From Lepidodermella squamata (taxonomy: Eukaryota; Animalia; Gastrotricha), in the NCBI GenBank assembly GCA_047495785.1, contig JBLDXI010000031.1:1-64000 (forward strand): a stretch of 64,000 nt of DNA. Direction: 5' to 3'. The position numbers and the translations under genes are program-made. The notes under the pieces were generated by a model. The model saw nothing but the letters and a program-made list of their open reading frames with translations. It was not told the origin of the DNA and made no database searches. Positions 19,484 through 42,041 of this stretch are shown here, in pieces (position 1 is the stretch's first letter; the number at the start of each line of letters is the position of its first letter).

Positions 19484-21732
19484 ATGCAAGCAAAAACATC
19501 TCAAGTTGCCTTTGGAAAGGCTGAACAGTTTGAACAAATCAGAAAGGACTGCTTACGCCGACGGCAGAAGTTTGAAGATCCAGGTGAGTAATTTCGTTTT
19601 GAGCTTTTCCATCTTTATACCTTACACCACATTATTTCAACAGAATTCCCTGCTTCCGATCAGTCTATTTATTACAGCAGCCAGCCAAGTCAGAAGTTTG
19701 AATGGCTTCGCCCAGATGTAAGATTCGTTTCATTTTGTTGATGATATCTTGAAAGTTATTTTTCATTTAGCAAATATGCTTCAAGTATCAACTTAAGCCG
19801 GAGTTGATAAGAATGGGCAGCCCAACAATGCGCTTCGATGTAGTCCAAGGCGATTACGGTGATTGCTGGCTGGTTTCCGCTTTTGCTGGCATGTCAGAGA
19901 ATGAAGAGCTATTGTTTCGCGTCGTTCCTCGGGGTCAAAGCTTCAGCGAAGACTGGTATACTGGCATGTTTCGCTTCCGCTTCTGGCGATTCTCGCAGTG
20001 GGAAGATGTGATCATCGACGACCGTTTACCCACCATTAATGGCCAATTGGTTTTTGTTCACTCGCAATCCATTGCTGAGTTTTGGCCTGCTTTAGTCGAA
20101 AAAGCCCTGGCAAAGCTGTATGGCTCGTATGAGGCGATGAAGAGTGCTTTGTTGGGTGATATCCTTACCGATCTGACTGGCGGATTAGCCGAGTCTTATC
20201 TGCTCCACGGCTCTGGCGCTAACCTGCCGAAAAATATTATCAACGTCATGTTCAAAGCACTCGAGCGCGAGTCAATTATTTCCTGCAGCATTCAATCTGG
20301 CAATCGCAATGCCGGAGCGTCGTTCCAACCAGGGCAGCGTCTCCCTAACGGTCTGATATTAGGTCATACTTACTGCGTGACCGACCTGCGAGAAATTCGA
20401 CTTATCACTCAAACTGGCGAGATTCCATTTGTTTTAGTCCGTCTGCGCAACCCGTGGGGGTCCCGGGTTGACTGGAATGGCGCATGGTCTGAGCGCAGTG
20501 AAGAATGGCAGTCGATTCCCGATGAAGACCGCCGAGAAATGGGTCTTGTTGTTCGAGGAGAAGCCGAGTTCTGGATGGAATTCCACGACTTCCTTGCTAA
20601 TTTTGATACGCTAGACCTGTGTAATCTAGCACCTGATGCTCCCGTCCGAACACCAAGGCGCTGGTCTGGTCGATTGTTCAACGGCCGTTGGATCCGTGGG
20701 GCTAACGCTGGTGGTCGGCCAGAATGCCGCGAAACTCACTGGACCAACCCTCAAGTCCGTCTTTGGTTACGAGAGCTGGATGATGACGAAGAAGGGCTGT
20801 GCTCTTTAATCGTCGAATTGGTGCAGCGAGACGAACGTGGCGTCAAGTATCGCGCCCCAAATCACGCCCATATCGGCTTTGCAATCTACCAACTACCCCC
20901 TGGGGGTGAACCGCCAGTCAACGACGAGGGCACAGCGATTGTTCAAGAGCCGCAAAATCGGGCGTTTTTCGACACGCATCAAATAATTGTCCACTCTGGT
21001 TGTTTCGCGAATAGCCGACAGGTCACTCGACGTTTCCTACTCGCCCCGGGAGATTACCTGCTGGTTCTAGCGACCTACGAGCCTAACATACCTGCTTCCT
21101 TCACTGTGCGTTGTTTCTTTGAGAAACCTGGCAATACGGCTCAGTTGCTGGACAACGACGCCGAATTAGTCAACCCGCAAGCTTCACTACTCGGCCCGCC
21201 ACTGACCCTGAGTGAATCACTGGCCCCGGAGGCCCATGAACGATTAAGGTGGTTGTTCTACGAAAGCGCTGGCGAGGAGATGAAAGTTCAGGTTTCGAAT
21301 CTACCCCAAATTTTGGCAGCTGCTTTCAATAACGAGTTCGAAATAAGTCAAACGACAGCCCGAGCTTTGTCTCTACTTGTCGACTCCGACCGAACTGGCT
21401 TTGTCGACTACAACGGATTCGCAGCTCTGTTCCGCCTGGTTGGCCAGTGGCGTCGTTCCTGGTTTGAAAATCGAACTAACGACCGGGCTGCAACGTTGGA
21501 AGCGCATCAATTAGGCCCGGCTTTATTAGCAATCGGGTTCAAGTTACCTTCCAGAGCTGTAGCTGCGATTTTACTGCTTCACGGTGATCAAAAAATGGGT
21601 CTGAGCCTTGATTCTTTCCTCACCACGGCCGCCCGCCTCCACCAGGCCGGGTCTACATTCAAGAAACTGCAACACAACGGTCGTTTAGTTCTCAGTCTCG
21701 ATCAGTGGCTTGAAGAAGCTATGGTCGCTTAA
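19484..21732 (+). CDS. Classical calpain (CysPc-C2L-PEF)
   Basis: Exons 19484-19583, 19644-19717 and 19771-21732 give FEDPEFPA...WLRP. Catalytic motifs QGDYGDCW, GHTY and LRNPWG, then AGG...NPQ (C2L) and an EF-hand-like DSDRTGFVDYNGF. Confidence 0.95.
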
Positions 21733-22344: not shown

Positions 22345-22483
22345 GGCACCCTATTAGTAGTTGACGCCGTCTGAAGAGTTCTTCTTTGGATCAGGCGTTG
22401 ATTCTCCCGCCAGGTGCGAGATCTATCGAATTTTCTGTTGAATGCATTTTTCGCTTGAAACGCGATCAATGTTTCAGACAATT
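22345..22483 (+). ncRNA. H/ACA snoRNA copy 1 (5' pocket predicted for 28S helix 69)
   Basis: GCACC...GGTGC stem with pocket strands TAGTAGT and CTCCCGCC, imperfect H box AGATCTA, second hairpin, ACA at 22478. Confidence 0.75.
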
Positions 22484-22609
22484 TCATACAATTTATGTTT
22501 TCTATTCCAGAGAATCAACAACAACTTTGGATAAAGTAGCCGCGAAGGTCGATTGATATACTTTCGATCGATAAACAAGGTGAGTGACTAAATTTGATTG
22601 AATTTTTCG

Positions 22610-22746
22610 GGCACCCTATTAGTAGTTGTTTGTGCTTAATTCCACATTCAATTCTCCCGCCAGGTGCGAGACTAAAATTCGATTTCGGGACTAGTTACTC
22701 GAATTAACGCTCCTCAATTCGAAATTTGTCTTGATTTTGAACATTT
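22610..22746 (+). ncRNA. H/ACA snoRNA copy 2
   Basis: Same 5' hairpin, H box AGACTA, second hairpin, ACA at 22741. Confidence 0.8.
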
Positions 22747-22834
22747 TTCATTTCAGATTCTTCTCGATCGAATGGAGCTAATGACTTCGAATGACTTTGA
22801 GGTTAGAATATTAAATATTTTTATTGGCATGAAG

Positions 22835-22976
22835 AGCACCCTGCTATTAGTAGTTGCCGCTTAGTCTCTTGTAGGCGTAGCGTCAATTCTCCCGCCAGGT
22901 GCGATACCAAAATTGTGTCAAGGCGTTTTTTCGATAGAATTCAATTCAATCGGAAGGTTATATGACTCGGACATTA
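22835..22976 (+). ncRNA. H/ACA snoRNA copy 3 (pockets for 28S H69 and 28S UAUGAC-U-GAACGCCU)
   Basis: H box ATACCA. The 3' pocket is AGGCGTT / GTTATA, with 14 nt from the pocket to ACA at 22971. Confidence 0.85.
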
Positions 22977-23077
22977 ATTTTCTTATTTTCCAGGTGCGCT
23001 TTGGCTCCGAGAAAAATCCGGCGATCTGGCTGAATTAAGCGATTTGTAAGTTATTAATACTATTTTATTCCAAGTCT

Positions 23078-23193
23078 GGCACCCTATTAGTAGTTGCTTG
23101 TGTAATCCCCACATGCGAGATTCAAACTGATTTCGAGATTTTTTCTCAAAATTATTCCCCATAATTTTTGGATCTTCTCGATTTTGAACAACC
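23078..23193 (+). ncRNA. H/ACA snoRNA copy 4 (degenerate 5' hairpin)
   Basis: Keeps GCACCCTATTAGTAGTTG but CTCCCGCC has decayed to ATCCCCAC; ACA at 23188. Confidence 0.6.
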
Positions 23194-23303
23194 AATTTTT
23201 TATTTCAGTTTTCGATAGCGGCATTTTTCGCGATAATTGTATCGGCAGTTCTTCACAATCAAAGGTAAATTTAGTTTTCATTTACCACTAGTAGTAGTTT
23301 TAG

Positions 23304-23446
23304 AGCACCCTATTAGTAGTTGCCGCTTGCTTTTTCTCGGAAAAGCGTAGCGTCATCTCTCCCGCCAGGTGCGATAAAGACATCGCTTCAAGGCGTTTTT
23401 TCGATAGATTTTCATTCAATCGAAAGGTTATATGACGCGGATATTA
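23304..23446 (+). ncRNA. H/ACA snoRNA copy 5 (close paralog of copy 3)
   Basis: Same two pockets as copy 3, imperfect H box, ATA variant of the ACA box at 23441. Confidence 0.78.
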
Positions 23447-23642
23447 ATGTCAATTTCTCCCATTTCAGCTAATTGGCCTCCAGACCTGTCAAATATGGTG
23501 CTAAAATTCTGACTTGATTTCCTGTGATATTTTATTATGGTGGATTCTTTTCAATAAAACTGATCACTTCATTTTGATTTGCGTTTATTTTGTTTTATTC
23601 ATAATTTTTGCTCTTAAATTAGACGACTTTTGAAGGTGAAAA

Positions 23643-26600
23643 ATGGCAGATGATGCCGCAAAGGACTTGCCATTTCGAGCCGAATACGCGAAAAGTGGCC
23701 GGGCAGGGTGTCGCGGGTGCAAGGAAACTATTTCTCAAGACTCGCTACGCCTCGCGGTCATGATCCAGAGCCCGCATTTCGACGGGAAAATGCCCAATTG
23801 GTACCACTACGCGTGTTTCTGGAAGAAAGCTCGAGTTCAGAAGACAGAAGATATTCACGGGTTTCACTCACTGCGGTGGGAAGATCAGCAGAAAATTGAG
23901 AAGCAAATCGGAGGAGGTGGGGCCGCGGGTGGAGATGCGGCTGCCTCGTCCGGAAAAGGCAAAGGCAAGGGCAAAAAAGGCGCCGCGGCAGCAGCAGCTG
24001 TTGATGATTCCGGGACACGAGATTTTAAGGTGGAATACGCGAAATCAGGCGGGTCCAAGTGCCGCGCTTGCGAGGAGAAAATTCCGAAAAATGAAGCTCG
24101 GTTAGGGAAAATGGACTACGAGTCTGACCAGGCGAAGATGTACGGACCTCAGGTGAGAATATTAAACTGAATTTAGCCGACTTTCGATAGCTGCTCTTCA
24201 AAACCGCTAGGCATTTTAATTATGAAATATATCAATAGGGCTTAACGGCGAATTATCCGCTCATTTACGCCGATCCTTGCAGTTGTTAATTGTTTAAATC
24301 GAAAATAATTTTGGTAAAATTTCAAAAAAATTTGAATCGCACAAATCTAATTCTGATTTCGGAAATGCTAAAAAATGTCAGATTTCTCGAAAAACTTGAT
24401 CGAAAATTTTTCTGATACGACTACTTTCAGAATCAATCAATATTTACTTGTTGGGTTTTATCTATTGAATCGTAATTTAACTGATTTTTCAGACTCTGTG
24501 GCACCACGTTCAATGTTTTGTTGATAAACGCGTCGATCTCGGCTTCACGACTGAATTGAATGTCGAAACGTGCGCCGGATTTGCGCAGCTCGAGAAGGAA
24601 GACCAACAGCGACTGGTCACCCTACTCGGCAAGGGCGAGTCATCGCGGCCGAAAAGTGTCACAAATCAGGATAAAGAGGACGGCAAGAAGTCGTCGAAAA
24701 AACGCAAGGCCAAGGACGAGCCGGATAACGAAGATTCGATCTCAACAACATCGACCGCGGTCGAGAATAAAAAAGCAAAGGACGATGTCGCCGAGCAACT
24801 CAAGTTGCAGAATAAAGAAATCTGGGAAGTTCGCGATAAATTACAAAATTCAGATTTGAGCACGCGAGATATGAAAGAATTGCTCGAATTCAACGACCAG
24901 CACGTGCCTGAGGCCGGGAAATTGATCGAACGACTCGCTGATTGCCTGCTATTCGGCGCTTTAGCCCTGTGCCCTGAATGTAAAAAGGGTCATTTAGTCC
25001 ACTCAGATACGTGCAATGCCTATCGTTGCACTGGTCAAATGACTGAATGGGCGAAATGTGCCTATCAAACTAAGACCCCGAAACGGAAAAAGATGGTATT
25101 TCCGGACGACCTCAAAGAATCGGTTGATATTTTCAAAAAATATAAATACAAAGCGAGAGAGCGAATTTTCCCGCCAGATCGCGTTAATCCCGTGAAAAAG
25201 GAGGAGGCTACTTCGAAAACTGACGATTCGAAACCGTTATCTCTGCTGAAATTTGTTGTCAGTGGTCGAATGACACGGCCTGTCAACGAATTGCGCCAGG
25301 CTTTGAGTAATTTAGGCGCTACAATAGCCGCTGATGTCGATGGCACGGTCATCGCCCTGGTCACGAGCTCAGCTGAGGCGAAAAAAGGCTCGGCGAAATC
25401 GAAAATAATCCAATCAGCCGAAACTGCCGATATCCACGTTGTCGGCGAGGAATTTATCACCGAAGTCCTTGAAGTGGCGAAAAATTCGAAATTGAAAGTT
25501 GTTGTTCAAGACCCGGGTCAACCTGCAGACCCGGTTCCGGACGGATTCACCAATTTGGCTGATTTGATTGTGAAACATCAGATTGTGCCGAATTGCGGTG
25601 GTAATGTCAATTCGAGGATTCGGTTGAATTTGGCGAAGTCGATGGGTATTGTTGCGAAATCAACTGCGGCGTTGAAATCGGGCCTGAAATCGGATTATAA
25701 AAGCGGCCCAGAAACGAAAAAGTTCAAGGTCAAAGGCCGCTCGGCCGTTGATCCAGACTCAGGTTAGTTCATTTTTTGAAAAAATATTTAAAAAAAGAAA
25801 TGTCGGAACATTTTACGCGAGAATATGTAATTGGTATAAATTTTCAGGAACAAAATTCAAGAACAAAAAAAATGTCTGAATCTAAGATTTAAATTAATTT
25901 TTGCAATTCCAAAACTAAAAAATTGAAAAAAATTATTATTTCGATTCAATTAATTTTTCGTAAATACGAAACCGAAACAATAGGTATTCTTTTTAGCCAT
26001 TTTGTTGCCTTTTTCAAGTAATCTCGCGTCTCGCGTATTATTTTCGGTCACATCTTCGGACTATTCGATACAGGCGGCGGTCAGAATAGCCGATCGTCGC
26101 CTCACTTTGCGTCCGTACATCAATTTTTCACGGCTTGAAAAGCCAACTTGACTACAAAGTCGATCGGTCGTTACCGTGGCCGAACGGGACAGATTTCAGT
26201 TGGACATTACATTTTCTCGTTAAATTCTTTTCCTAGGTTTGGACGACGAAGCTCACGTGCTGGAAGAAGGCTCTTGCATTTGGAATTGCGTCCTCAATTT
26301 GGTATCGATCGAAAACAAAATGAATTCCTACTACAGGCTACAATTGATAGAAAGCGACACCAAGTAAATTTTGTGATTTTTTTCCTCATTTTTTTTATAA
26401 TTTATTCCGAATTTTATCAGGAAAACTTGGTGGGTTTTCCGAGCTTGGGGTCGAATTGGCACAACCATTGGCAGCAACAAACTTGAGAGGTACTCGAGTA
26501 AGGACAAAGCCAAGGATAATTTCGAAGAGGTGTTTCTTGAAAAAACCGGCAATCCGTGGAATAAGGGCGCGTTTTCCCGCCAGAAAATCCCAGGCCGCTT

Positions 26601-29600
26601 CTACCCGGTCGACGTTGATTTCGGGGTCGACCCTGATGAACAGGCGAGCAGTTTGTCGCTGGACAAGGCCGGCGGTTCGTCGAAGCTGCCGAAGGAGGTT
26701 CAAGAGTTGATCCGGTTGATCTTTGACGTCAAAATGATGAAGAAGATCATGGCTGAGATGGAGATTGATTTGAAGAAAATGCCACTCGGTAGACTGAGCA
26801 AGTCGCAAATTCAACAGGTTTGTATTACAATTTTTTAATGGGGCTGGTTTGATTCAAGTTGACGTGGTCAGTTTAGTCAGCTTTCCGAACATAAGAGGAT
26901 AATTATTAGCATGGGTGATTCCTTGCGTGCTAAAACAATTAAAACCTTTAAAATCCTTAATCGCGCGTTCAAGAAGACTGGAAAGATAGTGTTTGTATAG
27001 TTTTCTATTTAATTTTCTGCTCCCAGCTGAAGACCAAAAGCATGAAAGGGAATAATCAGTTGTTTCATCGAAGATTTAAAAGATTTAAAAGAGAAGTTAA
27101 TTTCATGGCGATAGAGGATCCCCGCGGTCGCTCGAGCTTTTGAAGGATCAATTTTCTTAACTGCGGACTCCACTTAGGTCCAGACCACTCTGTGTAGTCA
27201 TCGCGTGTTCTTTGATCTCATAGTGCACGAGACCCCGCGTTGGGCTTACTGCAACAGACACGGAGAAGTTATTTCCAGGACTTGACGTTGGCATTTTCGT
27301 AATAGCCCGCTTGCCTTTTTTGCCCGACCGAATCACCCTCGTGCCCAGAGACATTGATTGAAACTCTAGACACAGAACGGGTTGGCCGACGGAAAAACCG
27401 GCAAGAGAATCACCAGCCGGTTGAACCGTGAATTGAGGCCATATTGAGGCTCTGACATTTGAGTGGTGTTGAAAGACGGTTCATTCGAATAGACGCCGGT
27501 GTCGAACGGCATGGAGGATAACAAACTGACATTCGAGGGTGTTGTGAAAGTCACGGTGGTAGCTCGGTTGCTGACTGCGGGCTCTTGAACAATAGTTCTC
27601 GTAATCGACATTTGTCGATGTCGGAGAAACGCATTGTGGGCGGGAAATCGATCCATGCCACTATGGTGCTGCGGCGCGGACGGACGCGTCGACGTTGGCG
27701 GGCGATAACCAGACCTAAGCTTATAAGGCAAAAACTTGGGGAAGCCGTCAACAAAAATTGGATTCATGAATTCGCCCAAATAACGACCTATCTTATTGCA
27801 GCCGTAACAGGCAGTTACGGTGCGTCGACAAACAGTGCAGCGACTAGCGGCGTGTCCGCAACGGGCAGTCTCAGGCGATGCCAGGCCTTCACCTGCATCC
27901 CCGACGACCAGTGCCCCGTTCGGAGGCAGAACTTCGTTGCGAGCAGCAATCTGGATGGCATACTCCAACCTAAAGCGGGTAAAAATATTCACCAAGATCA
28001 ACGTTGCGTTATCTTTTAAGTAATTCGAAACAAAGTTCTTGCAGCCCTCCGTTTGGATCGGCAGAGTTGCGAAAAACAATTTTGCCAGGATTTCTTGATT
28101 GTAAAAAGAATCTCCGCCTTGCTGCGACTTCAATTTGTTAAGGACCTTGCTAAAACTTGCGATATGGGCATCGGGCGAAGTCCCTAAAAGAAAAACAGGT
28201 AAATCGCGGTAAGCCACCAGCGACTGGACGACTGGACGAGTGGATGGTCGAGCGTGAGAGCGGCGTTGACGTCATTCCAACACTTCACGGCCGAATAGTT
28301 ATCATTGATGATGAACGTAAGGTGTTCACCAATCGTTCGCGCGATTGCATAGCGGATCTCGCCATTGAGGATCGTCCACCAACGCTCGTTGTTACCATCA
28401 GCCGGCGGTTCAGCGGTTCCCGTCATGATTTCCAGCGCACCTTTCAAATGAAACATCTGGTTCCGCCAAGCGGCCAGGTTGGTCGTGTCGTTGAGTACAA
28501 CCTTGAATTCTTCGCTTCCTGAGCCCATAACAATATTGAGTTTCCAAATTGCGCACGAGCCGATAAATCGAATAAAAATTGCGTAGGTTCGTGCGACTAG
28601 CACCGAATTAGACAGCATTCCAGCCACAGGGCTAGCACACCTTCCACACACCTAAAGCAATAGGGAAAATTAAAATTTAATTTTTCTAAATTTTCTTAGG
28701 CTTACACCGTGCTATCCGATCTGCAAAAAGCTATCGAAAACCCACCCAGCGACGGCGCCTCGAACAAGCAGTATGTTTTCATCGACGCTTCAAACCGCTT
28801 CTACTCGCTGATCCCGCACGATTTCGGCATGAATGCCCCGCCTCTCATCGATTCTTTGAAGGCGATTCAAGACAAAACGACCATGCTGGACGAACTGATG
28901 CAAATCGAACTCGCGTATCGAATGTTGTCCGATTCCGGGCAAAGCGGCGCCGAAGACCCGTTGGACGTGCACTACAAGCAGTTGAAGACGGAAATCGTCC
29001 CTGTTGATAAGGCGAGTGATGAGTTCAAGCTGTTGGAGCGGTATGTCAAGAACACGCACGCGGCCACGCATTCGCAGTACAAACTGGTCGTCCAGGACGT
29101 GTTTCGGGTGGATCGCAGCGGCGAGGCGGGTCGGTTCGAGCCGTTCCATAAACTGCATAACCACCAGCTGTTGTGGCACGGGTCGCGGCTCACCAATTTC
29201 GTCGGCATTCTCAGTCAAGGTATGCATGAAAACATTAATAGCTATGCTGTCATGCGGGGAAACTTTGGACAAAACCCGTGTTTTTTTTCGGTTTTAAGAT
29301 TATTCCTAATTCAGAAAATTAAGACAGAGATGTTAACCTGTCCAAAATTACCCAGCGCAACCCCTTTTAACTGAGTTATTATCCAATTATTCAAATTTCA
29401 AATACACATAAGTAACGCAAAATATAAAATGCCATACGAATAGTAATCAAGTATGTCTCATGTGAATGGGAAATGGGATTAAAAAATCCGAAGAAATGTT
29501 ATCCAACCAGTTAAAAACCGAAAATTACCGAACCAGTTACCATCGGGGTTTTTCAGGGTTTTCTCCGGTAAATTTTTAATTTATTCGGTAGAGTCGTGGA

Positions 29601-30437
29601 TAAATGATGGAAGACATCCCCCAGCGGGCTTAATTCCAAAAAATAACCTATTTATTATCTAAAAAATGTCCAAAATTGAAAATGGTATGCCCATTTTAGC
29701 GAATAAACGCCTAATTTTTCAATCTTGAAATTTTGAACTCTTCTGGAATTTTTTTACCATCTTGATGAAATGTTGATAATTTTTAGGTCTAAGGATCGCG
29801 CCTCCTGAAGCGCCGTCGACTGGTTACATGTTCGGAAAGGGCGTTTATTTCGCCGATATGGTCTCGAAATCGGCGAATTACTGCTTCACCTCGGCTATGA
29901 ACAACACGGGCCTGTTGCTGCTATCAGACGTGGCTCTCGGAAATCCTCACGAGGTTCTACATGCGAAGAGCTTCAGCAAAGCGCCTCAGGTATTTATTCA
30001 AGATGCTAAGGCTGAAAATGTATCGAAAATTGAAATACAGAAAAAATGAGGAGGATTTTTTAATTTAAAGTTTTTTTGAAATCCCAAATTTTTTGAACGT
30101 GATTTTTGAATTATCACTCGAAATATGGTTTTTCGAGTTTCACATCTCTAAAATATTTTCTCATAATTTCGATTTTCGTACTTGAAATGTAATTTTTTGT
30201 GTTTTATTCCAGGGATTTCATTCGGTCAAAGGCTGTGGCATGACGTGTCCGGATCCGAATGGCGCCGCCCAGTTGCCGGTGGCTGACGCCGGTTACGAAA
30301 TCACGGTGCCCTGTGGCAAGCCCAAACAGTCGGGCGCTGCTGGATCGTCGCTGCTCTACAACGAATTCATCGTGTACGACGAGGCTCAAATCCGCCTGCG
30401 CTACCTGCTGAAACTCGACTTCAAATACAGCGTTTGA
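23643..30437 (+). CDS. PARP1: Poly(ADP-ribose) polymerase 1 (Zn1-Zn2-Zn3-BRCT-WGR-HD-ART), 7 exons
   Basis: [13 protein letters not shown]...WYHYAC, second finger [74 protein letters not shown] (H-Y-E triad intact). Exons ~23643-24152, 24493-25762, 26237-26363, 26421-26817, 28700-29219, 29787-29989, 30213-30437. Confidence 0.97.
27170..27375 (-). mobile_element. Fragment of a Tc1/IS630-type DDE_3 transposase
   Basis: Frameshifted SFN...[37 protein letters not shown] resembles the segment after the first catalytic Asp of DDE_3 transposases. Confidence 0.5.
27740..28650 (-). mobile_element. Degenerate Ty1/copia retroelement 5' end (putative LTR, PBS, frameshifted gag) in a PARP1 intron
   Basis: Putative LTR starting TGTG at 28650. 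PBS GTTATGGGCTCAG (28519-28531) resembles the copia half-tRNAiMet PBS GGTTATGGGCCCAG. Gag-like NLAAWRNQM...SAVKCWNDV and [12 protein letters not shown]...FFATLP, with a degenerate zinc knuckle [10 protein letters not shown]. Confidence 0.7.
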
Positions 30438-31515
30438 ATAACACATTCCAGTCGGACATTTTATGCACAAAATATCAGAGACCATATTGACAATGCCATG
30501 AACATTTTTCATTTCTATATAACCTCATTACGCAGTGATATTATAATAATATTGTAAAAATTACGCGTGTAATAAAAAATTCGTGTTTCTTGAGCGAATT
30601 TCCACGGAAAAATTTGAGCTGAAACTGGTTTGAAATTGCTGCAACGCCTGTTGTTTGAAGAAGCGGACTCGTGATAATGAATGTTTTACGGTTGTTGAGA
30701 ACATTACCTGCTCTTGATTTTTCGTTTCGTTATGCCATTTTTCAGTATATTAATAATTTTGTGAGGCTATATTCCGGTTGATTGTATCGAATTATCTTGT
30801 ATTAAATAAAGGGAAATTTGAAAATATTCTTGCAGAGTTTTTCATCGAAGTAACACGGTGAGTGAATCGGGATTCATCGCAAACCCACCCGGTAGCGTGT
30901 GGTAAAGATGAGCAGCTTGTGCGAGAAACGTGATGTTATTCACGAGAAACGTGAACCTCATGATATTTCACGCAAATTATTTCAATATTTAAGCTTGATT
31001 TCGTGGCAATTTAGAACTCTTGTCTCTTGTCTGCCTAACCTTGAAGAATTTCAAGTTGCGGGTAATTTTGATAGATCTGCCCTAAATTCGGATCGACTTT
31101 TGATTTGGTTTTCGAGAACACAGAAATTCCCACTTTCCTTATTCATGCCAAATATGAATAAAACATCTAAAAGGGAAACATCTAAAAAGGTTAAGAACCT
31201 GTTACTCCTATCGTTTCAAAGGTAACCCCGCGTAAAGGTATATTCATCTGACTGAGCCAGAATTAACGGCGATCTATATAATAAAAGTAGAATTAACTTT
31301 GAACGTCATGGAATTTGAGAGAAATTTTGAAAAAATGGGGTCACAGTTACGCAACTGCTGGAAAGATGTAAGCATAAGATTTCAACTTTGTTACGCAATC
31401 ATAATCCGAACATTGTTCGATTGGTTCGTAGACAATCACAGCCGCACAACGTCATTTTTCATCGCTGTTAGCACGACCTTTTTCAGAATTTTTGTCAACT
31501 CGAAACGCGATAGTA

Positions 31516-34500
31516 ATGACTCGATCCGAGCCGAAATCTGGCCACGACCGGCCTTACAAAGCTGAGTACGCGAAAAGCGGTGGTTCGCACTGCCACCGGT
31601 GTAACAACATGATTGCCGATGGCTCGTTACGCTTGGCTGAAATGCCCGATGCGGCGACGGTTCCGGACGCGCGGACGCCGCAGTACTTTCACTTTTCCTG
31701 CTTCTGGCGCAAACATACCGCCAAAAGTTTGAACGAATTCGAAAATTGGCGCGATTTACGCTCGGCTGACCAGCAAGCTATGGAAGAAGCTATTCACGGT
31801 TGGCTGAACCTTTCAATTTAAAACTTCTTCAAATTCCAAAAATTTTAATTATTTATTTAAATTAAAATTTTTTAATTTTTTTCAGGTATGCATACTGCGG
31901 GCGAGACGACCGAGGAAGAAGAAGAAGCGTCGGAACTTGCGGGCGAAGTTGCAACTGAGAAGCAAAGGGTGCCGGAAGCTGCTCAAGCGGCACTCGAGGC
32001 TGGCGCCCATCGAGCCGGTCTTCGAACTTTTAAAATCGGCTATGCTAGGTCACGTGGCAGCCGGTGCCGGGCTTGCGATGAAAACATCAACATGGGCGAT
32101 GTTCGAATCGGAAAACACGACGGTAATTTTATTGCCCTAATTTCAGACATTTTCGAAGTTTTAAATTTGAAAATTTTGATTTTTAGTGGACACCGAACAT
32201 GCATTGATGTACGGACCCCGGATTCAGTATCACCACATCAGATGCTTTGTAGCGAATCGACAAGAGCTGGACTTTCCGTCCAATGCGAAACTCGAACAAA
32301 TAGCCGGATTCAACACGCTTCGCGACCACGACAAACGGCGATTGGTCGAAGCCCTGGGCGGTAAGATGCCACCTAAGCAGACACCAAAGGGTGGTGACCA
32401 AGAGACCCGACCTGGCCGAGATTCCGGTCTTGGCGATGAGGAGGAGCATCATCAAAAAACTACGACGACCTTCAAACCGCATGTTGCCGCTGATTTCCGG
32501 GGTGAAGGCATCAAGACGATGAAGCCGGAGGAGGCGGAGAGGGAGAGGGAGAGGGAGGAAGAGGCTGGGGGCGAGGAAGAATACGAGGAAGGCGATGTGT
32601 CTGAAGGCCCGGCTCGGCGGGTCATTGCTCGGCGCCAATCAAGAAAAATGGAGCATGAGCAGCAGCAACATCAGCAAAAGGAAAATCGCGAGCAAGAAGA
32701 GCAGCCGATGGAGCAGGGGAGTGGGGGCGATGAGGTGAAGGAACAAAAATCACCCCATTTAGCGGCCTTCCGACCTCCGCCCTTACTTGAATCAGGTAAA
32801 ATTTAAAAAAATTGGCGGAATGAGGCCAACATTTTTCGATTTTTTCAATTTTGAAATTTTAAAATTTAAATTTTTCAAAATTCGAAATTAGTGCGGATCC
32901 AGGATATTACTTGGAAATTTTTCCAATTCGCTTTCACATTTTCAATTTTAATATTTTACTATTTTAGGTGAAAGGCCGTTGAATAACCTTCGATTTTTCA
33001 TTGCGGGTCGCATGCAGCGCCGCTCGCTGGCCGAGGTGCGCGAGGACCTGGTTCGCCTCGGCGCCACTATTGTACCGGAACCTGATGACACGACCGTGGC
33101 GGCTGTTGTCTCCGATTACAAGGCCCGCATCGGCTCCCACAGCACCCACGTCCGAGCTGCCATAAAAGCCGATGTTCACGTCGTGGGCGAGGTAATCTTT
33201 TTTTTTAATTTTCCTGCATTTCTGTCGATTTTTTCAATTTAAAAAAATGGAAAAAACTTTTAAACATTTTCAAAAATTCAAAAATCTCCATTTTTCATTT
33301 TCATTTTATGAATTTTGTTATTTTTTAGGATTTTGTGGATGACTGTGTTGCCGCCGCTCAAGCTGGTCGCCTCGTCGCTGACCCTGCCTCGTACCACGAG
33401 GCGAAACATAACGGCTCGGTATGGTTGGCTGAGTTGGTCGAGCGTCACGCTCTGGTTTCGAATTGCGGCAGTGACGTGGCGGCCCGAATTCGCCGCTGTT
33501 TAGCCGCGTCCCACGAAATCGGCGGCCGGCACTTGGGCAAGTCAACGGCCGAGGCGATTGAGTCGTCGCCGAAAAAAGGCGAGAAAGGCGAAGGCGTGGA
33601 GGAAAAACGCCCGAAAGTGGAACCTCGGCGAACGGTTGATCCCGAATCAGGTACTTCTAAAAATTTGAAAATAATTCAAACTTGAAATTTGATTGATTTC
33701 CCTATTTCTGGGAAGTCTCCAGAATCTTGCTATGATTTTTTCCAAAAATAAAGATAGGTCTATAAGCATTTTCACCAATAAAGTCGAGTTCCCAGCGCCC
33801 AATTTTTTAAGCGCCGAATAGCTATTTTGGCTTATTTTCTTTTGTTGATAGGTACTGAGGCTCTGGGATTCTCGGTACCAGTTAGGTAGAAACATGTTTA
33901 TTTTAGGCCTCTATGACCTTTGGTATCGGAAAAATTACTGATTTGAAAAACCGACCCGTGGAATCACCATCGGCATGAAAAAATTTAAGATAAAAAAGAT
34001 TAGGTACCATATTTTGGAGAAATTTAGTGCTGGAACCCAAGGGTCACTTGCTGGAACACTTGGACTGATTAGATATTGCGTGCGGAACCTTGAAGTTTCG
34101 TGGAAATTCCCAAGAGTTTCAAGCGCTTTCGAGAAAAAATTAAATTCTGTTCAAAAATTCAGTTGGCTTAAAAAAAGTGGCCACATAAAGCAGAGAAAAT
34201 TCTGGACGAAAAATAGTATCTTGCCGATGCAAGTCGTTTGCGACTAGCTGAGATGGAAGATAGAATTGAAAAATCGCCGGTGAATTTCAGGAAACAAGTC
34301 CAAAGAAGAGCTTTTGCGTAGCCTTTCAATTTGAAGTTAGCTGTTGGCAGTTACAGTGATTGGAATGATTTCAACTGAGCGATTGAGCGTTGTAATTTTG
34401 CATCTTAGCTCAGTGTTTGGTTCAGCTCAATTCATCATCGATATGTTAATCAGCCTGATTTTGAGAATTCGGGTCACCATTCTCCATTAAAAAGGACGTG

Positions 34501-35187
34501 ATTGCGATAACCTGGCTATTAGGCAGTTTTATTAGTCTTTCGCCCCTATACGCAACTGCGATGGTCCCTGAGATTGATTTGAGAGAGGAAGAAACCAAAT
34601 TGAGAAAATGAGAAAAAATTTAACCAGAACTATACAGAAGCTATGTGGTAGTATCGGTGTGATCTTGGCGTGTAATAAATATCAAGTAATTAACAATTGA
34701 AAAATTAGTTAGAAATTTTTTTTTCGAAAATCTCACAATTGAATCAAATTTAGGCTCGGAACACAAGAAATGCATACATACTTAGTTAACTTTTATGAAT
34801 ATTTTTTTAGGCTTGGAAGATGAAGCCCACGTCTTCGAAGAGGACGGCTGTGTCTGGAGCGTTTTACTCCATTCAATCCCCGAGGTGAGCCTATCGAATT
34901 TCTACTACCGAATCCAACTGTTCGAATCCAACGACAACGCCGTATGGTGGGTCTACCGGTCGTGGGGCCGCGTTGCCACCGCCATTGGCTCGACCAAGCT
35001 CGACGTTTTCGACTCGAAAGACGCGGCTAAGCGCAATTTCGAGGAGGTTTTCACGGATAAAACCGGCCTCGAGTGGAATAAGGGGCAATTTTCGGCTGAA
35101 CGCATCGTTGGCCGGTACTACCCTATCGACGAGACGGACGTTGAAACGCCGCAGACGGACGAGCCGCAAAAAATGGCCGTTGACTGA
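31516..35187 (+). CDS. PARP1 paralog without catalytic domain (Zn1-Zn2-acidic linker-BRCT-WGR), 6 exons
   Basis: [13 protein letters not shown]...YFHFSC, GYARSRGSRCRAC...YHHIRC, Glu-rich linker, BRCT (LRFFIAGRM...DVHVVGE) and RSWGRV. TGA at 35185-35187, AATAAA at ~35333. Confidence 0.85.
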
Positions 35188-35881
35188 AATTAATATGGCA
35201 ACGCGCTGGGATTTTCGTAAAGCTAACATTTTTTAATCACTTAATTTCTTAGAATTTCTCACTCTTTTAATTAACCTTATTTCTCAATAAGCTTTTGTAA
35301 TATAATTGATGATAATAACGAGAGGCGGAGACAATAAAATAATTGTTTTATTATCGAAAGATCTTTTTTATTTTATTTTTAAATTAAGTTTAAAAATTTA
35401 AATTGCTGATAGCTGAAATTTAATAGATTGAAAGAAAAATTTCTGGGCAAATTGCAACAGTACTGCGAGTAGGAATCGAGCTTGAAAGAAAAAATTTCAA
35501 AAATTTGTATTATAAAATTAAGAAAATTGAATATCAAATTTTGAGAAAACGCTGTCTCTAAAGTGGCAGTTCACTTCAACGAATTATTCGCTATGAAGTT
35601 TTCAAAAAAATATAAATTCAGAAATTCTTTGAAAATTTCCAGAATTAGTTCATCAGTGGGCTAAAATTTTGAAATTCGGGAAAAGTTCATTCGCCGAAAT
35701 TATTTTGAATTTGTTGAAGCTCTATCGAGAAGTACCTTTCTTTCTATTGATCTTTTCATCATTTCCCTGCAAACAGCAGCATTTTTGGAATTTTTGGAAT
35801 TTTTGGCGGATTTTGGCAACGTTTTATTCCTCTTTTCCATTCTCGTTTTTTTCTTAGAATTTACCAAAATTGTAATTTATA

Positions 35882-38546
35882 ATGGAATATTGCGCTGAAT
35901 ATGCGAAAAGCGGCCGATCGCGGTGTCGAGTTTGCCGCGATTTGATCGATATCGGCGAGCTGCGGCTCGGCCGCATGGTTCAATCGATGTTTTTCGACGG
36001 CAAAATCCCTCAATGGCATCATTTCGATTGTTTCTGGAAACGCAAATCAAACTTCTCGAATCTCGAATCAACTCGCGACATTGGCGGTATCAGTGATTTA
36101 GCACCAGCCGATAGGCAAAAAATCGAGCTGCGCCTCAAAATCGAACCTCGCCACGATGATAACCTAATTTTCGACTACTCGAAAAGCAACCGGTCAAAGT
36201 GTAAAATTTGCGACTCGCCGATTCAGATGAGCGAATTTCGAGTCGGAAAAATGGAACCGACGTCGTCACGCGTCGTTTGGCACCACGCCAAGTGTTTGGA
36301 AAACGACCTACGTCACGCTTCAGATATCACCTCAATTCCTGGCTACAATCAACTGAAGCCAGAAGACCGTGAAATCGCGTTGAATTTGATCTCGCCGCAT
36401 CGAAAGCGACTGTCAAGCGATGCAAATTCAGCCATGCGTGACCAACACGATTTACTCCTCGAGATTCAAGACCAGCTTGAAGAGGCAACGCATGAAAAGT
36501 TGAGTTTACTCGATTTTACGGTGATTCTAGCTGAAAATGACCAGTTTGTTCCCGATGCGTCACGCTTGGTTGCGCATCTCGCGGATTGCCTAGCTTTTGG
36601 CGCGTTACCAAGGTGTCCGAGCTGCAAAATCGGCCGCCTGATGCTTAGTGATGATGCGAGTGGCTACCAATGCCAGGGTGATCGAAGCGGCGGCGAGCTA
36701 CGCTCATGTTCCTTCGTAACCCGAAACCCGATGCGAATTCCTATGATGATTCCGAACGATGACCGCTTCAAACAAATCGAACTTTTCTCCACCTACAAAT
36801 TTGTTGACCGAACTCGTCTTTTCGAAGATAGCCCAGCTACGCCGAAGCGAGCGAGGACAAAGTTTCAATCCTCGGATCCTGAGCTTGAAGGTAAAATCCC
36901 AAATTTCGGGTTTTTTCGGTAATTTTTCCAAACAATTTATAGGCTTAAAAAAAGAGGCTCATATCTACAAGGACGCTGATGGGACAAGTTGGCAGTGCCT
37001 TCTTCACTCAGTTTCGATTACTATGGGCCGAAATTCGTTCTACAAGATTCAGCTTTTCGAATCTAACAAAAAGTGATGCACTAAAATTTCCGTGAAACTA
37101 TTTTGAAATTCCAGCTTTTAGAGATGCGTGGTGGGTTTTGCGAAGCTGGGGCCGGATTGGAACCGATATCGGCAGCTACACTATGGATAAATTCCCGAAT
37201 GCAGCATCAGCCGAACGAAAATTCGAGCAATTTTTCTTCGAGAAAACCGGTCGTTTATGGGAAAAGGGCAAAGGCCAGTTGTCGTTAGCCGGGCAAGCAA
37301 CTGCCTTCAAATACCAGCCTATCCCGATCTCAGATAATTCGAATGAACCTATCGATATTTCGACCCTGACGCAATCGAATAAAGACGACGAAGAGCTGGG
37401 CGATAAGAAAGCTTCACCCTCAGTTCGAGACCTTGTCGCTAAAATGTTCGACCCTGAAGAGGCGAAGCGAGAACTTCGCGAGGATCTTGGCCTGGATGCC
37501 GATCAAATGTCCCAAATTTTGGCGAATCAGCGTGACGGGCAGCGGCTTCTCGAACGAGCCGATCATCTTCTCAAAGATTTGCTCAACCAAATCGGCGAAG
37601 AAAAGCAGATGCACTTCGTCGAACAAGCTTCGAGCGCGTTCTACGCTCTTATCCCGCACAATTTCGGCCTTGACCGGCCTACAGCGTTGGACAACAGGCG
37701 AATTATTCGAGATAAAATGGCTCTAATGGCTCGTCTCCATCGGCTTTACATTACTCATCAGATGGGTCGAGACGCTGGTCAGCTTTACGAAGCTTTAAAC
37801 ACGAGAATCGAAGAGCTGGAGTTCAAAATTGATGGCAATGAAATCGAGTTAATTGATGCGTATCTGCGAAATTCGACTCGAGATTTCGAAGGGTCAATCA
37901 AAATTCGATCGATTTTTCGCGTCGATCGAGAAGCTGATGCGGCGTTTGGTCATCGCTTTGTTCACGCAAGTTTTTCTAACCATAAATTGCTGTGGTTTGA
38001 GCATGCTTCGTTGGCTGATTTTCCGGCGATTTTACGTCATGGTCTGCATGATTATTCGCATGTTGATCGATTTTACGATTCGGCGATGCCGTGCGTTGAA
38101 AAGGCTCGGTCAGCCAAAGTTACCCCGAAATCTCTTCTGCTTTTGCTAGCCGATGTTGGTATGGGTAATTGCTACTTCTTCAATAAGCCTATCGACTATT
38201 ACCCGTCAAACAATCTCATTCCTCCTGACGTAAGTAGCTAAAAATACTTAATCGTTTCTGTTCCTATATAACTCTTATTTATTTATTAACATAGAATTAT
38301 CATTCTATTCGATTTGTTGGCACCGTATGTCCGAATCCTTGCGAGTCGCGTTGGATCACCATGGATAAGGATTCTAGTTGCTTGGAGTATCAATTGGAAG
38401 TCCCAGTTGGTCGGTCGATTTCAGTGGAGGAATCGTCACAACGCGGCGAGCTTCTGGATGGTGGAAATCGTAGCGACTACAGCATTTATATTGCTGGGGT
38501 CAATCAAATCAGTTTACGATATCTGGTGTCTGTAGATGTCAGCTAA
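35882..38546 (+). CDS. PARP1 paralog with degenerate catalytic domain (Zn1-Zn2-Zn3-WGR-HD-pseudoART; no BRCT), 4 exons
   Basis: EYAKSGRSRCRVC, DYSKSNRSKCKIC, ADCLAFGALPRCPSC, RSWGRIGT, FYALIPHNFG. The catalytic motifs read LLWFEH, RFYDS and RSDYSIY. Confidence 0.88.
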
Positions 38547-38736
38547 ACTGAGTACCTGGAAACTCTGATATATTGAAACTGACAATGCTTTTTCTTATAT
38601 TATACCTTTAAATTGAATTCCTAAGCGAACTTATAAACGAAGTTCGAACTACTTCTTGAAATAAATTGCACTGAATTACTGAAACGTGGTTTTCTTTTGA
38701 ACAAAAACGTGATTTTCAAGGTGAGAGCTTTTTTAA

Positions 38737-39135
38737 CCCTTAGCCGCCGGCGCAATGACGTGTTAACTCGAGCACCTTTCAGAAAATCCCAGAAAATCAA
38801 GAAGAGGCAAAAATCAAATTCTGAGTCGGCAGAAAGTCTTACATTTAGCCTTAGATTGAAAGCCGAACCTCTATTTCAGAATAAATTTACCTGGGTTGCC
38901 GTTGCTATGACGTGTTAACGCGTTTTCATGACGTGTTAACGAGTTTTGACGTTATCTCACTATTTTCGACCTGCTCAGAATGGCTTTGAAAATTTGGATT
39001 TTCAGGGAGTGCTTGTTTCTTGCTATTGATTTATCATAATTTATGACGCAACAATGGGTTCGATAGCCCAAATCCTCCGACCACGGTGAATTTTCTCCGG
39101 AATTAACGCGTGTACACGTCTTCGGCAGCTAAGGG
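38737..39135. mobile_element. Non-autonomous piggyBac-type element
   Basis: TTAA on both sides (38733-38736, 39136-39139). TIRs CCCTTAGCCGCCG / CGGCAGCTAAGGG, with repeated ATGACGTGTTAAC motifs inside. Confidence 0.85.
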
Positions 39136-39189
39136 TTAACTTTCAGCACAAAATTGTGAACCTTAAAGAACTGATGATCCTAGTATCAA

Positions 39190-39880
39190 TTATGGCAAAT
39201 TAGTACCGATATTCTGGTCTATAATCGCGAAAATAGTTCTAACAATTTTGGATAAAACAGGGGTAATTTCGGACAAAGAATTTAAATGTGCTACGATAGT
39301 TACGTCCGAAACCCGATGCCAACCCTCCTTAAAGGCAGTCGGACATGGCTCGAGCACGAGACTAGCTAACCAGAGCACAGAGGGGCAATGCGCGGGCACG
39401 TCTGTTGTTTTCGGTCTAAAACTCCTCGCTATACCAGCGTTAATACGCATGTGCCCTAGCTCCAAGGTAGCTTTTTGGTCGTAGAAAGATAGAAGGTCCG
39501 TCACATTCTGATCGACTCGAGCGCGGCGCGGAAAATAACTAGTTAAACCGCGATCTGCCCAAGCGCATGTCCAAGCGAGACTAACAGTATAGTAAGCTGC
39601 ATACCTGGGGAGCTCTGTACAGCATCAGGAACGAAAAGGACCGGTTTCACGGACAATTTCGGTGAGTGCAGCATGAACTTATTGACGAAGCTTAAGTTAA
39701 TTCTCTTTTCTCACAAGAATAAGAATTTAGCTCTTTTGACCGCATTGTTTAAAGCAGTTAATGTGCAAGCTGACGGACAGGCTATGACCTGAGCCCTAAG
39801 CACATTCCCAAAATCAAGCGTCCAGCTTCCATCAAGGCTGCCATCCTACACAGCCATCGCAATCGCCCTCGTTTCCCGTG
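39190..39880 (-). mobile_element. Possible degenerate 3' end of a non-LTR retrotransposon ORF2
   Basis: Broken, intronless, GC-richer reading frames with HMRINAGIAR...HCP(LC)...PCP, resembling a C-terminal CCHC region. Confidence 0.35.
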
Positions 39881-41681: not shown

Positions 41682-42041
41682 ATGAGTACTGATGATAAGA
41701 AAAAGTTGAGAGCCGAAAAGTTCGGTGCGATCGAGCCTGAACCAGCTAAAGCATCCACAGAAAAGAAAGTCGAGAGGTCGCAACGTTTCGGTACGGATTT
41801 GCCTACAGATGTCAAGAAAAAGACTCGAGCTGAACGGTTTGGGTCTGCAGCGAACGGCAAAGAAGCAGCAGCACCTGAAGCTACTCCAGAGGTGAAGGAG
41901 AAGCGTGATAAGCGCAAGGAACGCTTCGGCGCCGTGGAAAACGGCAGTGATAAGCCTGCTGCAACCGCGCCTGCAGATCCTGAAGTTGAAGAGAAGCGAA
42001 AAAAGCGCTCAGAGCGCTTTGTCGAGGCTCAAAGCTCTTGA
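41682..42041 (+). CDS. SARNP/Tho1/MOS11-like mRNA export factor lacking the SAP domain
   Basis: 119-aa ORF with five RxxRF(G)-type motifs (RAEKFG, RSQRFG, RAERFG, RKERFG, RSERFV); AATAAA at 42140. Confidence 0.8.
   Translation: MSTDDKKKLRAEKFGAIEPEPAKASTEKKVERSQRFGTDLPTDVKKKTRAERFGSAANGKEAAAPEATPEVKEKRDKRKERFGAVENGSDKPAATAPADPEVEEKRKKRSERFVEAQSS

Follow-up and report, generated by a model that had tools for sequence, protein, structure and literature searches.

Animals sense DNA breaks mainly through PARP1, which is also a major drug target, and inactive PARP1 retained on DNA is blamed for much of the toxicity that PARP inhibitors show. A DNA-binding fragment consisting of the zinc fingers Zn1 and Zn2 is generated from PARP1 by caspases, and the DNA-binding domain serves as a trans-dominant inhibitor when over-expressed. 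The catalytically dead mouse mutant Parp1 E988A forms persistent foci, blocks repair dominantly and is dominantly lethal (PMC10401025), and a PARP1 that persists at breaks without catalysis can therefore strongly alter repair. Pseudo-PARPs with an inactive ART fold are known, namely PARP9, PARP13/ZAP, plant RCD1 and TASOR (PMC2964712, PMC7532188), and the PARP family is expanded in Adineta vaga, a bdelloid rotifer, in which irradiation is followed by over-expression of 17 PARP genes (PMC10809525). No natural, selected, genome-encoded "PARP1 without catalysis" was found in the literature or databases searched.

The locus described here contains three PARP1-derived genes, A, B and C, arranged head to tail within a 64-kb window, by which we mean the whole stretch of DNA that was analyzed. 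Each gene was modeled as one open frame interrupted by GT-AG introns only:

23643..30437, + strand: gene A, a complete PARP1 of 1083 aa with Zn1, Zn2, Zn3/PADR1, BRCT, WGR, HD and an ART with H-Y-E; 7 exons (23643-24152, 24493-25762, 26237-26363, 26421-26817, 28700-29219, 29787-29989, 30213-30437)
31516..35187, + strand: gene B, a sensor-only paralogue of 683 aa in which Zn1, Zn2, an acidic linker, BRCT and WGR are followed by a stop; 6 exons (31516-31798, 31886-32122, 32187-32795, 32968-33191, 33329-33650, 34811-35187)
35882..38546, + strand: gene C, a pseudo-enzyme paralogue of 832 aa with Zn1, Zn2 (shortened loop), Zn3, WGR, HD and a degenerate ART, lacking BRCT; 4 exons (35882-36890, 36943-37072, 37122-38229, 38295-38546)

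No further PARP1-like sequence was detected in the window by tblastn. The first-pass annotation had read the locus as one active-type enzyme followed by two non-catalytic paralogs with complementary domain losses. The triplet was confirmed by gene models, Pfam matches, zinc ligands and triad motifs, and both Pfam and the near-invariant columns of PARP1 bore out the losses, as B lacks the catalytic domain and Zn3 while C lacks BRCT and has a degenerate ART.

Gene A shares the full architecture and the triad of canonical animal PARP1 (human PARP1; PARP clade 1, Citarelli et al. 2010, PMC2964712). Pfam matches were obtained for two zf-PARP domains, PADR1, BRCT, WGR, PARP_reg and PARP, with zf-PARP (PF00645) scoring 117 bits, all zinc ligands in place and the WGR motif at 26437-26463. 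The triad motifs read LLWHGSR (29168-29188), GVYFAD (29840-29857) and YNEFIVY (30357-30377), and A alone of the three genes combines a helical regulatory domain with an ART that has the H-Y-E triad as well as the donor loop. Gene A is 66% identical to the single PARP1 of a relative and 48% identical to oyster PARP1, and its branch in the tree is short (0.12). Gene A is probably the working PARP1 of the organism. B and C derive from the canonical form, whose zinc fingers and WGR they retain (the Trp, Gly and Arg conserved in WGR occur in all three genes), but they differ from it in that B is without Zn3, HD and ART, and C is without BRCT and has a degenerate ART. The third zinc-binding domain (PADR1_N plus Zn ribbon) is present in A and C and absent from B.

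Gene C matched two zf-PARP domains, PADR1, WGR and PARP_reg in Pfam, with 123.5 bits for zf-PARP (PF00645) and 51 bits for PARP_reg. Its zinc ligands are complete (35921-35935, 36017-36031, 36197-36211, 36281-36295 and 36614-36634) and its WGR motif lies at 37138-37164. Retention of near-invariant columns was 95% in Zn1, 83% in Zn2, 100% in Zn3 (13/13), 82% in WGR, 58% in HD and 42% in ART, the last value standing against 95-97% for even the most divergent true PARP1s. The ART was located as follows:

37837..38546, + strand: degenerate ART of gene C, matching PF00644 at 19.4 bits, under the 26.7-bit cut-off

Within it, the His motif reads LLWFEHAS (37987-38010), the His being, according to the alignment used, either replaced or displaced by 2 residues, and the donor loop carries an 11-residue deletion (38035-38061). 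Moreover, the equivalents of Y896, S904 and Y907 are gone, the Tyr/Ser/Tyr region being replaced at 38065-38094, and the catalytic Glu aligns with Asp or Ser, again depending on the alignment, in the region NRSDYSIY (38466-38489). The loss of catalytic and NAD+-site residues by which pseudo-PARPs are recognized is thus found in C. An AF2 model of exon 3 had a pLDDT of 83-95 across HD and of roughly 66-87 over the ART portion; it superposed on PARP1 catalytic fragments with a TM of 0.50-0.58, a value for a model that excludes the final 84 residues and whose fold is biased by an input alignment of ordinary PARP1s. The closest matches among solved structures were human PARP1 WGR-CAT structures. 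Elsewhere in C, the Zn2 loop is approximately 10 residues shorter, and the equivalent of human W318 is Leu.

Like the pseudo-PARPs, C has an ART-like domain that has outlasted its catalytic residues, presumably because it serves in structure or binding, but PARP9, PARP13/ZAP, RCD1 and TASOR belong to other PARP clades with other partner domains, and none has PARP1-type Zn1-3, WGR and HD as C does. C also resembles Parp1 E988A and inhibitor-trapped PARP1 as a break-binding PARP1 form without PAR synthesis, both properties being predicted in the case of C. Whereas Parp1 E988A is an engineered point mutant with the NAD+ site and automodification region intact, C occurs naturally as a gene of its own next to the active-type copy A, and the donor loop, NAD+-site residues and BRCT are all missing from it.

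Gene B matched only two zf-PARP domains, BRCT and WGR in Pfam. Zn1 scored 52.6 bits against zf-PARP (PF00645), and Zn2, which is interrupted by an intron, scored 22.1 + 21.6 bits. The CCHC zinc ligands are complete (31588-31602, 31687-31701, 32062-32076 and 32228-32245), the WGR motif lies at 34954-34980, and near-invariant PARP1 columns are retained at 84% in Zn1, 100% in Zn2 and 76% in WGR. Two residues have been lost from Zn1, the Phe that stacks on bases and the Arg conserved in KSGR. The frame ends 18 codons past a YPID motif, and both HD and ART are absent. In the place of Zn3 there is a different segment:

32360..32795, + strand: Glu-rich linker of gene B, occupying the place of Zn3/PADR1 in gene A

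The linker has 147 residues, with 30 Glu, 6 Asp and a net charge of −12; it retains 0/6 near-invariant Zn3 columns and gave no PADR1 match in Pfam. The architecture of the trans-dominant PARP1 fragment, with Zn1 and Zn2 but no catalytic domain, is present in B, though with a Zn1 that lacks the base-stacking Phe, and B would likewise be expected to occupy breaks without signaling. The fragment is a proteolytic or experimental product, whereas B is genome encoded and additionally has BRCT, WGR and the Glu-rich linker. Because B has neither HD nor ART, and because the ART of C falls below the Pfam cut-off with its catalytic residues lost, both are classed as PARP1-derived paralogues and not as PARP1 enzymes. 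Judged by their sequences, B and C have lost the ability to make poly(ADP-ribose). The triplet shows how a multidomain enzyme can split into complementary nonenzymatic paralogues after tandem duplication.

To judge whether B and C are maintained, neutral evolution was simulated to the observed divergence. Simulation gave 20-29 expected stop codons per gene, and 0/300 runs were free of stops. By comparison, there are 0 stops or frameshifts in the 1515 codons of the two genes (683 in B and 832 in C). GT-AG is kept in 8/8 introns, and the GC content of the coding sequence (0.57 in B, 0.48 in C) exceeds that of the respective introns (0.32 and 0.28). Constraint sits on the DNA-sensing domains, where 76-100% of near-invariant columns are retained while variable columns agree with the consensus at only 10-31%, and where both genes keep every zinc ligand together with the arginines of the backbone grip (LRL, RIG/RVG) and the WGR Trp and Arg. 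The earlier suggestion that intact frames and zinc ligands reflect selection is consistent with these results, and neutral evolution of B and C is contradicted by them. dS was saturated even between A and the relative, such that dN/dS is not estimable and there is room for a recent loss of constraint in B or C. One or both genes could accordingly be nonfunctional, either unexpressed or so recently freed from constraint that the frames have not yet been hit; orthologues were not found in the databases searched, recent relaxation is invisible with saturated dS, and the ART and HD of C are eroding, with 42% and 58% of near-invariant columns. That reading is opposed by the unbroken frames where neutrality predicts tens of stops, by the intact splice sites and maintained exon-intron GC contrast, by substitutions that spare the invariant columns of the sensor domains and by the degenerate ART of C, which spans about 230 codons, is split by an intron and is still unbroken. 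We consider nonfunctionality quite improbable and conclude that B and C are very probably selected, noncatalytic PARP1 paralogues. We note that the branches of B and C are very long (1.91 and 3.43, respectively, versus 0.12 for A), with which relaxed constraint or changed function is also compatible.

The origin of B and C was addressed by comparison with a metagenome contig of the relative, on which a calpain gene, one PARP1 and a Tho1/MOS11 gene occur in that order. Here, the order is calpain, A, B, C and Tho1/MOS11, with the following anchors:

19523..21729, + strand: calpain gene, upstream synteny anchor, 51-81% identical to calpain ORFs just 5′ of the relative's PARP1
41682..42041, + strand: Tho1/MOS11-C gene, downstream synteny anchor (PF18592, E 1.5e-9)

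The latter is 57% identical to a gene of the relative that begins 290 bp past its PARP1 stop. Moreover, A, B, C and the relative form a clade with support of 100/98 and 7 and 10 shared derived residues. The single PARP1 in the syntenic relative and the support for the clade together indicate that B and C are lineage-specific duplicates, as the first-pass annotation had supposed. Within the clade, the tree gave the grouping (relative,(A,B)) with support of 92/93 and 82/68, C taking the basal position. AU tests rejected no topology (ABC clade, p 0.17; A plus relative, p 0.62; A plus C, p 0.087), and counts of rare changes were balanced between duplications before and after the split from the relative.

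Two of the features first offered as signs of local duplication fared less well. The phase-1 intron at DPxSG|L is also present in the relative's gene and in oyster PARP1, and its presence in the oyster gene makes it ancestral rather than a mark of duplication here. As read from the gene structures, the same intron shows that duplication was at the DNA level rather than by retrocopying. The BRCT extension shared by A and B is half of a mark: its insertion of about 20 aa is also found in the relative and is thus a trait of the lineage, whereas replacement of the conserved BRCT Trp by Asn-Cys is specific to A and B, the relative retaining QQWGG:

33455..33472, + strand: "NCG" motif at the end of the gene B BRCT, with its counterpart in gene A at 25585-25602

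An intron in WGR common to A and C was also considered as a duplication marker and rejected, as an oyster phase-2 intron lies two codons away and the A/C intron is probably ancestral.

B-like or C-like orthologues were not found in other genomes by protein and metagenome DNA searches with single-exon or ORF queries, the word-index protein searches covering proteins 0.55-1.75 times the query length. The best protein match to exon 1 of C was 31% identical, and the best match to exon 3 of C in an exhaustive HMMER search was 37% identical, with all top matches compared being nearer to A than to C. Protein search with exon 2 of A recovered the relative only. The relative's N-terminal ORF in turn recovered ordinary PARP1s, the nearest of them molluscan at 40-43%, and the nearest named PARP1s were molluscan at 40-48% identity. 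In the metagenome DNA scan, the WGR exon of B gave no match, and exon 5 of A gave a best match of 53% with no close relative. The triplet is akin to the Adineta vaga case in being a lineage-specific multiplication of PARP genes, the rotifer being a stress-tolerant invertebrate; the rotifer paper (PMC10809525) describes no domain loss or noncatalytic copies, whereas here there are three copies only, with defined complementary losses.

Of the ways in which the triplet could work, the likeliest is that B and C modulate A. On this account, B and C arose within this animal lineage by tandem duplication of A at the DNA level and were retained as protein-coding genes. B keeps the two break-recognizing zinc fingers, BRCT and WGR, and, being without Zn3, HD and ART, would be able only to bind breaks and unable to signal. 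In C, the entire break-assembly module (Zn1, Zn2, Zn3, WGR and HD) is present, attached to an ART without NAD+-site residues and donor loop, and the BRCT/automodification region is missing as well. Both would sit at DNA breaks or at partner sites, either competing or cooperating with A, and their occupancy may tune the amount of PAR, the duration of break cover or the targets modified in trans. Expression of B and C, their DNA binding and their modulating effect on A are what we infer, and roles as decoys, modulators or factors in damage tolerance are plausible by analogy with PARP1 structural biology. The account as a whole, in which A works and B and C are retained duplicates that modulate it, stands in our estimation at an even chance, and the break-binding modulator mechanism falls slightly short of that.

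Alternatively, B and C could be functional without competing with A, as chromatin or transcription cofactors, as stage- or germline-specific scaffolds or as fast-evolving decoys in genetic conflict, for instance against transposons or viruses by which PARP1 is targeted or exploited. The very long and asymmetric branches would fit such roles, as would the alteration of residues for break-dependent activation (W318 to Leu and the Zn2 loop in C, the Zn1 Phe in B) and the failure to find an upstream motif common to the three genes. The best-retained parts of B and C, however, are the break-sensing domains with their ligand and grip residues, and no new domain was acquired, the B linker being merely acidic. 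We regard noncompeting roles as possible but rather unlikely. Changes that might weaken DNA binding or domain assembly are the Phe and Arg losses in Zn1 of B and the Zn2 loop and W318-to-Leu change of C.

A stronger form of the modulator proposal is a three-gene PARP1 buffering system in which B and C load beside A, cap PAR synthesis and NAD+ loss, and shield ends or act as trans-acceptors, for survival of bursts of DNA breakage. We hold this form to be speculative and unlikely; if true, a kind of protein with dominant lethality in mice would have been rendered harmless or even useful. If B and C are expressed, they constitute a natural experiment on how cells tolerate or use noncatalytic PARP1 at breaks, which would tell which PARP1 domains suffice for useful break binding and how PAR signaling gets damped without inhibitors.

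Finally, the gene models were considered as transcription units. B and C lie on the same strand 695 bp apart, and they could in principle be one unit, either by read-through or by joining, for example, of the B WGR exon to the C HD/ART exons. Splicing of B onto a catalytic exon had been named earlier as a way in which B might be an enzyme after all, and tblastn found no HD or ART exon between the B stop and the C ATG. Moreover, B has an in-frame stop (35185-35187) with AATAAA 146 nt downstream, the interval 35188-35881 is without coding homology and has a GC content of 0.275, and the ATG of C is at the very start of Zn1 and preceded by a strong acceptor-like site. The exon 3 acceptor of C is in phase 2 in mid-WGR, and joining it to the complete WGR of B would therefore duplicate half a domain. 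We consider a single B-C unit highly improbable. Rfam gave no match across 22000-42500, and the long introns of the genes have no repeat copy elsewhere in the window. Unpaired splice-acceptor-like sites were identified before B and C:

31477..31486, + strand: CCTTTTTCAG, 29 nt 5′ of the gene B ATG
35846..35857, + strand: TTTTTTTCTTAG, 24 nt 5′ of the gene C ATG

We infer that CCTTTTTCAG before B is a candidate trans-splice acceptor. AATAAA occurs past the stop of each of the three genes, at 134 nt in A, 146 nt in B and 114 nt in C, and the ATG of each is preceded by an acceptor-like site of its own.

Listing of open reading frames (ORFs) and Pfam scans of exon-sized ORFs indicated three PARP1-like genes arranged head to tail on the plus strand between positions 23643 and 38546. 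Exon boundaries were set by inspecting three frames and the splice sites, after which the following gene models were assembled:

23643-30437, plus strand, gene A, the complete enzyme, 1083 amino acids in 7 exons
31516-35187, plus strand, gene B, 683 amino acids in 6 exons
35882-38546, plus strand, gene C, 832 amino acids in 4 exons

Each model has one open frame and GT-AG at every intron (stated total, 17), and a tblastn search with A detected no other PARP1-like sequence in the 64-kb window. A contains the zinc fingers Zn1, Zn2 and Zn3 (PADR1), followed by BRCT, WGR, the helical domain (HD) and the catalytic domain (ART), the last with the motifs LLWHGSR, VYFAD and YNEFIVY. B contains Zn1, Zn2, BRCT and WGR; the position of Zn3 in A is taken by a linker of 147 residues that includes 30 Glu and carries a net charge of -12, and the reading frame stops 18 codons past the YPID motif that closes WGR. 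C contains Zn1, Zn2, Zn3, WGR and HD without BRCT, and its Zn2 inter-ligand loop is approximately 10 residues shorter. Zinc ligands (CCHC and CCCC) are complete in all fingers present in the three proteins. Thus, the gene models, Pfam content and intact ligands confirmed the anatomy of the triplet described in the first-pass annotation.

The ART of C is still recognizable, with a Pfam score of 19.4 bits against a cutoff of 26.7. Its His motif reads LLWFEHAS, such that Phe or Glu occupies the His position and the His is displaced by two residues (HMMER, MAFFT). Moreover, the donor loop has a deletion of 11 residues, the GKG-YFAD-SKSANY block is replaced, and, according to the alignment used, Asp or Ser stands at the catalytic Glu position. 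An AlphaFold2 model of C exon 3 alone, built with 29 PARP1 homologues as the input alignment, had pLDDT values of 83 to 95 in the HD and about 66 to 87 in the ART part. The model resembled human PARP1 WGR-CAT structures (Foldseek E value of 7e-14) and catalytic fragments (TM score of 0.50 to 0.58), for an alignment biased to PARP1 and with the last 84 residues, encoded by another exon, excluded. The prediction fits, weakly, with a retained ART fold in C.

A protein search with exon 2 of A returned one protein at 52% identity, encoded on a 38.9-kb metagenome scaffold (ENA ERZ23486764, scaffold_981) from an organism here called the relative. Gene order on that contig is calpain, a single PARP1, and a Tho1/MOS11-C gene 290 bp downstream, and gene order in the window is calpain (19523-21729), A, B, C, and a Tho1/MOS11-C homologue (41682-42041). 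The only match of B and C on the contig was its single PARP1, which was modeled as 1073 amino acids in 4 exons and shares 66% identity with A. A maximum-likelihood tree that also included 18 other animal PARP1s grouped A, B, C and the relative in one clade (support 100/98), with branch lengths of 0.12 for A, 0.38 for the relative, 1.91 for B and 3.43 for C. Moreover, derived residues in otherwise conserved columns were common to A, the relative and B in seven cases and to A, the relative and C in ten. The clade and the shared derived residues indicate that the duplications occurred within this lineage, after it had diverged from molluscs, annelids and the remaining animals in the sample, and together with the synteny they bear out the earlier proposal that B and C are local duplicates. 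The branch lengths put the rate of evolution of B and C after duplication at roughly 15 to 30 times that of A.

As to whether each duplication predates the divergence of the relative, the tree placed B with A (82/68) and C basally, no alternative topology was rejected by AU tests, and counts of rare changes were balanced. Replacement of the Trp at the end of BRCT by Asn-Cys, common to A and B only, favors a late origin of B. Any duplication that predated this divergence would mean that the corresponding copy has disappeared from the syntenic locus of the relative.

Two arguments offered previously for local duplication were corrected. A phase-1 intron between DPxSG and L is indeed present in A, B and C, which shows that B and C arose by duplication at the DNA level and not by retrocopying, but the same intron is found in the relative and in the oyster PARP1 gene and is therefore ancestral and no marker of local duplication. 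Likewise, the "NCG" ending of the BRCT extension is specific to A and B, but the insertion itself, of approximately 20 residues, is also found in the relative and is thus a trait of the lineage. A phase-2 intron in WGR is common to A and C, the oyster has a phase-2 intron two codons away, and the intron was probably ancestral, with losses in B and the intron-poor relative. A, C and the relative have the last ART intron in common, at a site that the oyster gene reads through. The relative's PARP1 has three introns compared to six in A.

The A coding sequence was mutated randomly in silico down to the amino acid identity observed or, in a milder setting, to 50%. These neutral simulations accumulated a mean of 20 to 29 stop codons, and 0 of 300 runs per setting remained open, compared to no stops in B and C; the simulations left out indels and are therefore lenient. 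Near-invariant columns, defined as those with a residue shared by 17 or more of 19 full-length PARP1s, were kept in B at 84% for Zn1, 100% for Zn2 and 76% for WGR, and in C at 95% for Zn1, 83% for Zn2, 100% for Zn3 and 82% for WGR. Retention in C was 58% for HD and 42% for ART, the ART figure being 95 to 97% in the two most divergent genuine PARP1s of the set, and agreement of B and C with the consensus at variable columns was only 10 to 31%. This pattern indicates that constraint was kept on the DNA-sensing parts and lifted from catalysis. Moreover, coding GC content was 0.57 in B and 0.48 in C, compared to 0.32 and 0.28 in their introns, and all splice sites of both genes are canonical. dN/dS was unusable as a test because dS had reached saturation even in the comparison of A with its orthologue; A-B values (dN of 0.38 to 0.68, dS of 2.2 to 3.0) are near saturation and unreliable. 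The simulation, column retention, and GC and splice-site data back the earlier suggestion that intact frames and zinc ligands despite divergence reflect selection. That B and C are dead or silent is quite improbable, and we conclude from these sequence comparisons that they are very probably selected noncatalytic paralogues.

A single transcription unit comprising B and C would make the two one gene. B, however, terminates in a stop codon and its own poly(A) signal, C opens with an ATG exactly at Zn1, and the internal acceptors of C, if joined to B, would duplicate half of WGR; a B-to-C fusion is therefore extremely improbable. AATAAA lies 114 to 146 nt past the stop in each of A, B and C. The spacer from the B stop (35187) to the C ATG (35882) has a GC content of 27.5% and gave no PARP1-like match in tblastn with A. 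Inspection of splice signals indicated two strong, unpaired acceptor-like sites:

ending at 31486, plus strand, acceptor-like site 29 nt before the B ATG
ending at 35857, plus strand, acceptor-like site 24 nt before the C ATG

As a lead only, these sites are compatible with spliced-leader trans-splicing.

PARP1 recognizes a break through Zn1 and Zn2, contacts the 5' end through WGR, and releases ART when Zn1, Zn3 and WGR assemble on HD; its main automodification region is the BRCT-WGR linker. By analogy, B would only bind, competing with A for breaks, or might sit beside A with its Glu-rich linker modified in trans. C would probably assemble on a break without PAR synthesis and without an automodification region, and would stay there until displaced, as a proposed natural analogue of trapped PARP1. 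Several sensor residues are changed: C has Leu at the W318 equivalent and a short Zn2 loop, and B Zn1 lacks the base-stacking Phe. Such differences argue that allosteric activation is no longer required in C and that neither protein simply replicates the A sensor. In the mouse, one catalytically dead PARP1 allele suffices for dominant lethality and prevents the repair of single-strand breaks (PMC10401025). For a protein of this kind to be selected here implies a regulated or altered role. We tentatively favor a role for B and C in modulating A by binding to breaks; a different function, for instance in chromatin, as stage-specific scaffolds or as conflict decoys, is rather unlikely.

PARP1 that is dead or DBD-only is familiar as a mutant, cleavage product or construct. 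A natural PARP1-type gene that combines Zn1 to Zn3, WGR and HD with a dead ART, or that retains only Zn1-Zn2-BRCT-WGR, was not found in the literature and databases searched. Among 1.84 billion representatives, no protein was more than 37% identical to the WGR-HD-ART exon of C, each top match compared was much nearer A than C, and in a language-model atlas the exon fell among ordinary PARP clusters. The relative's N-terminal ORF retrieved ordinary PARP1s only, molluscs being nearest at 40 to 43%, and metagenome DNA scans with the B WGR exon and A exon 5 gave nothing close. The searches returned no self-match, and thus this genome's own proteins are absent from the protein collections. Within the reach of these searches, B-like and C-like proteins were not found elsewhere, and the weight of the finding hinges on expression data. 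Other clades are known to include pseudo-PARPs (PARP9, PARP13, RCD1 and TASOR; PMC2964712, PMC7532188), Adineta vaga has a PARP gene expansion with radiation induction (PMC10809525), and a 2010 family survey reported the HYE triad in almost all clade 1 proteins, altered only in land-plant clade 1D (PMC2964712).

Other features of the locus were observed. The Zn1-Zn2 linker of A (23920-24030) contains a Gly/Ala/Lys-rich run, GGGGAAGG...; its length exceeds that in the relative and in the other aligned PARP1s. Intron 4 of A (26818-28699) is 1.9 kb, compared to 49 to 567 bp for other introns, and carries minus-strand ORFs of 283 (27366-28217) and 155 (28184-28651) amino acids; the ORFs had no Pfam match and the intron no second copy in the window, and it may be an inserted element. 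Intron 5 of B (33651-34810) is 1.16 kb, compared to 64 to 172 bp for the remaining B introns, and gave no Pfam, Rfam or repeat match. Upstream of A (22000-23600), no Rfam match was found at an E value of ≤0.1. The relative's contig (L001:1-19712 plus L002) carries ankyrin genes, calpain, PARP1 and Tho1/MOS11, syntenic with the window and packed 290 bp apart, and may be the sole public sequence close to this lineage. Repeated matches between 53444-54276 of the window, minus strand, and the relative's ORFs at L001 2830-4227 and 17573-18169 suggest a repeat-containing gene common to both loci. Finally, the gap from C to Tho1/MOS11 (38547-41681) spans approximately 3.1 kb without recognized coding sequence, and the equivalent gap in the relative is 290 bp.
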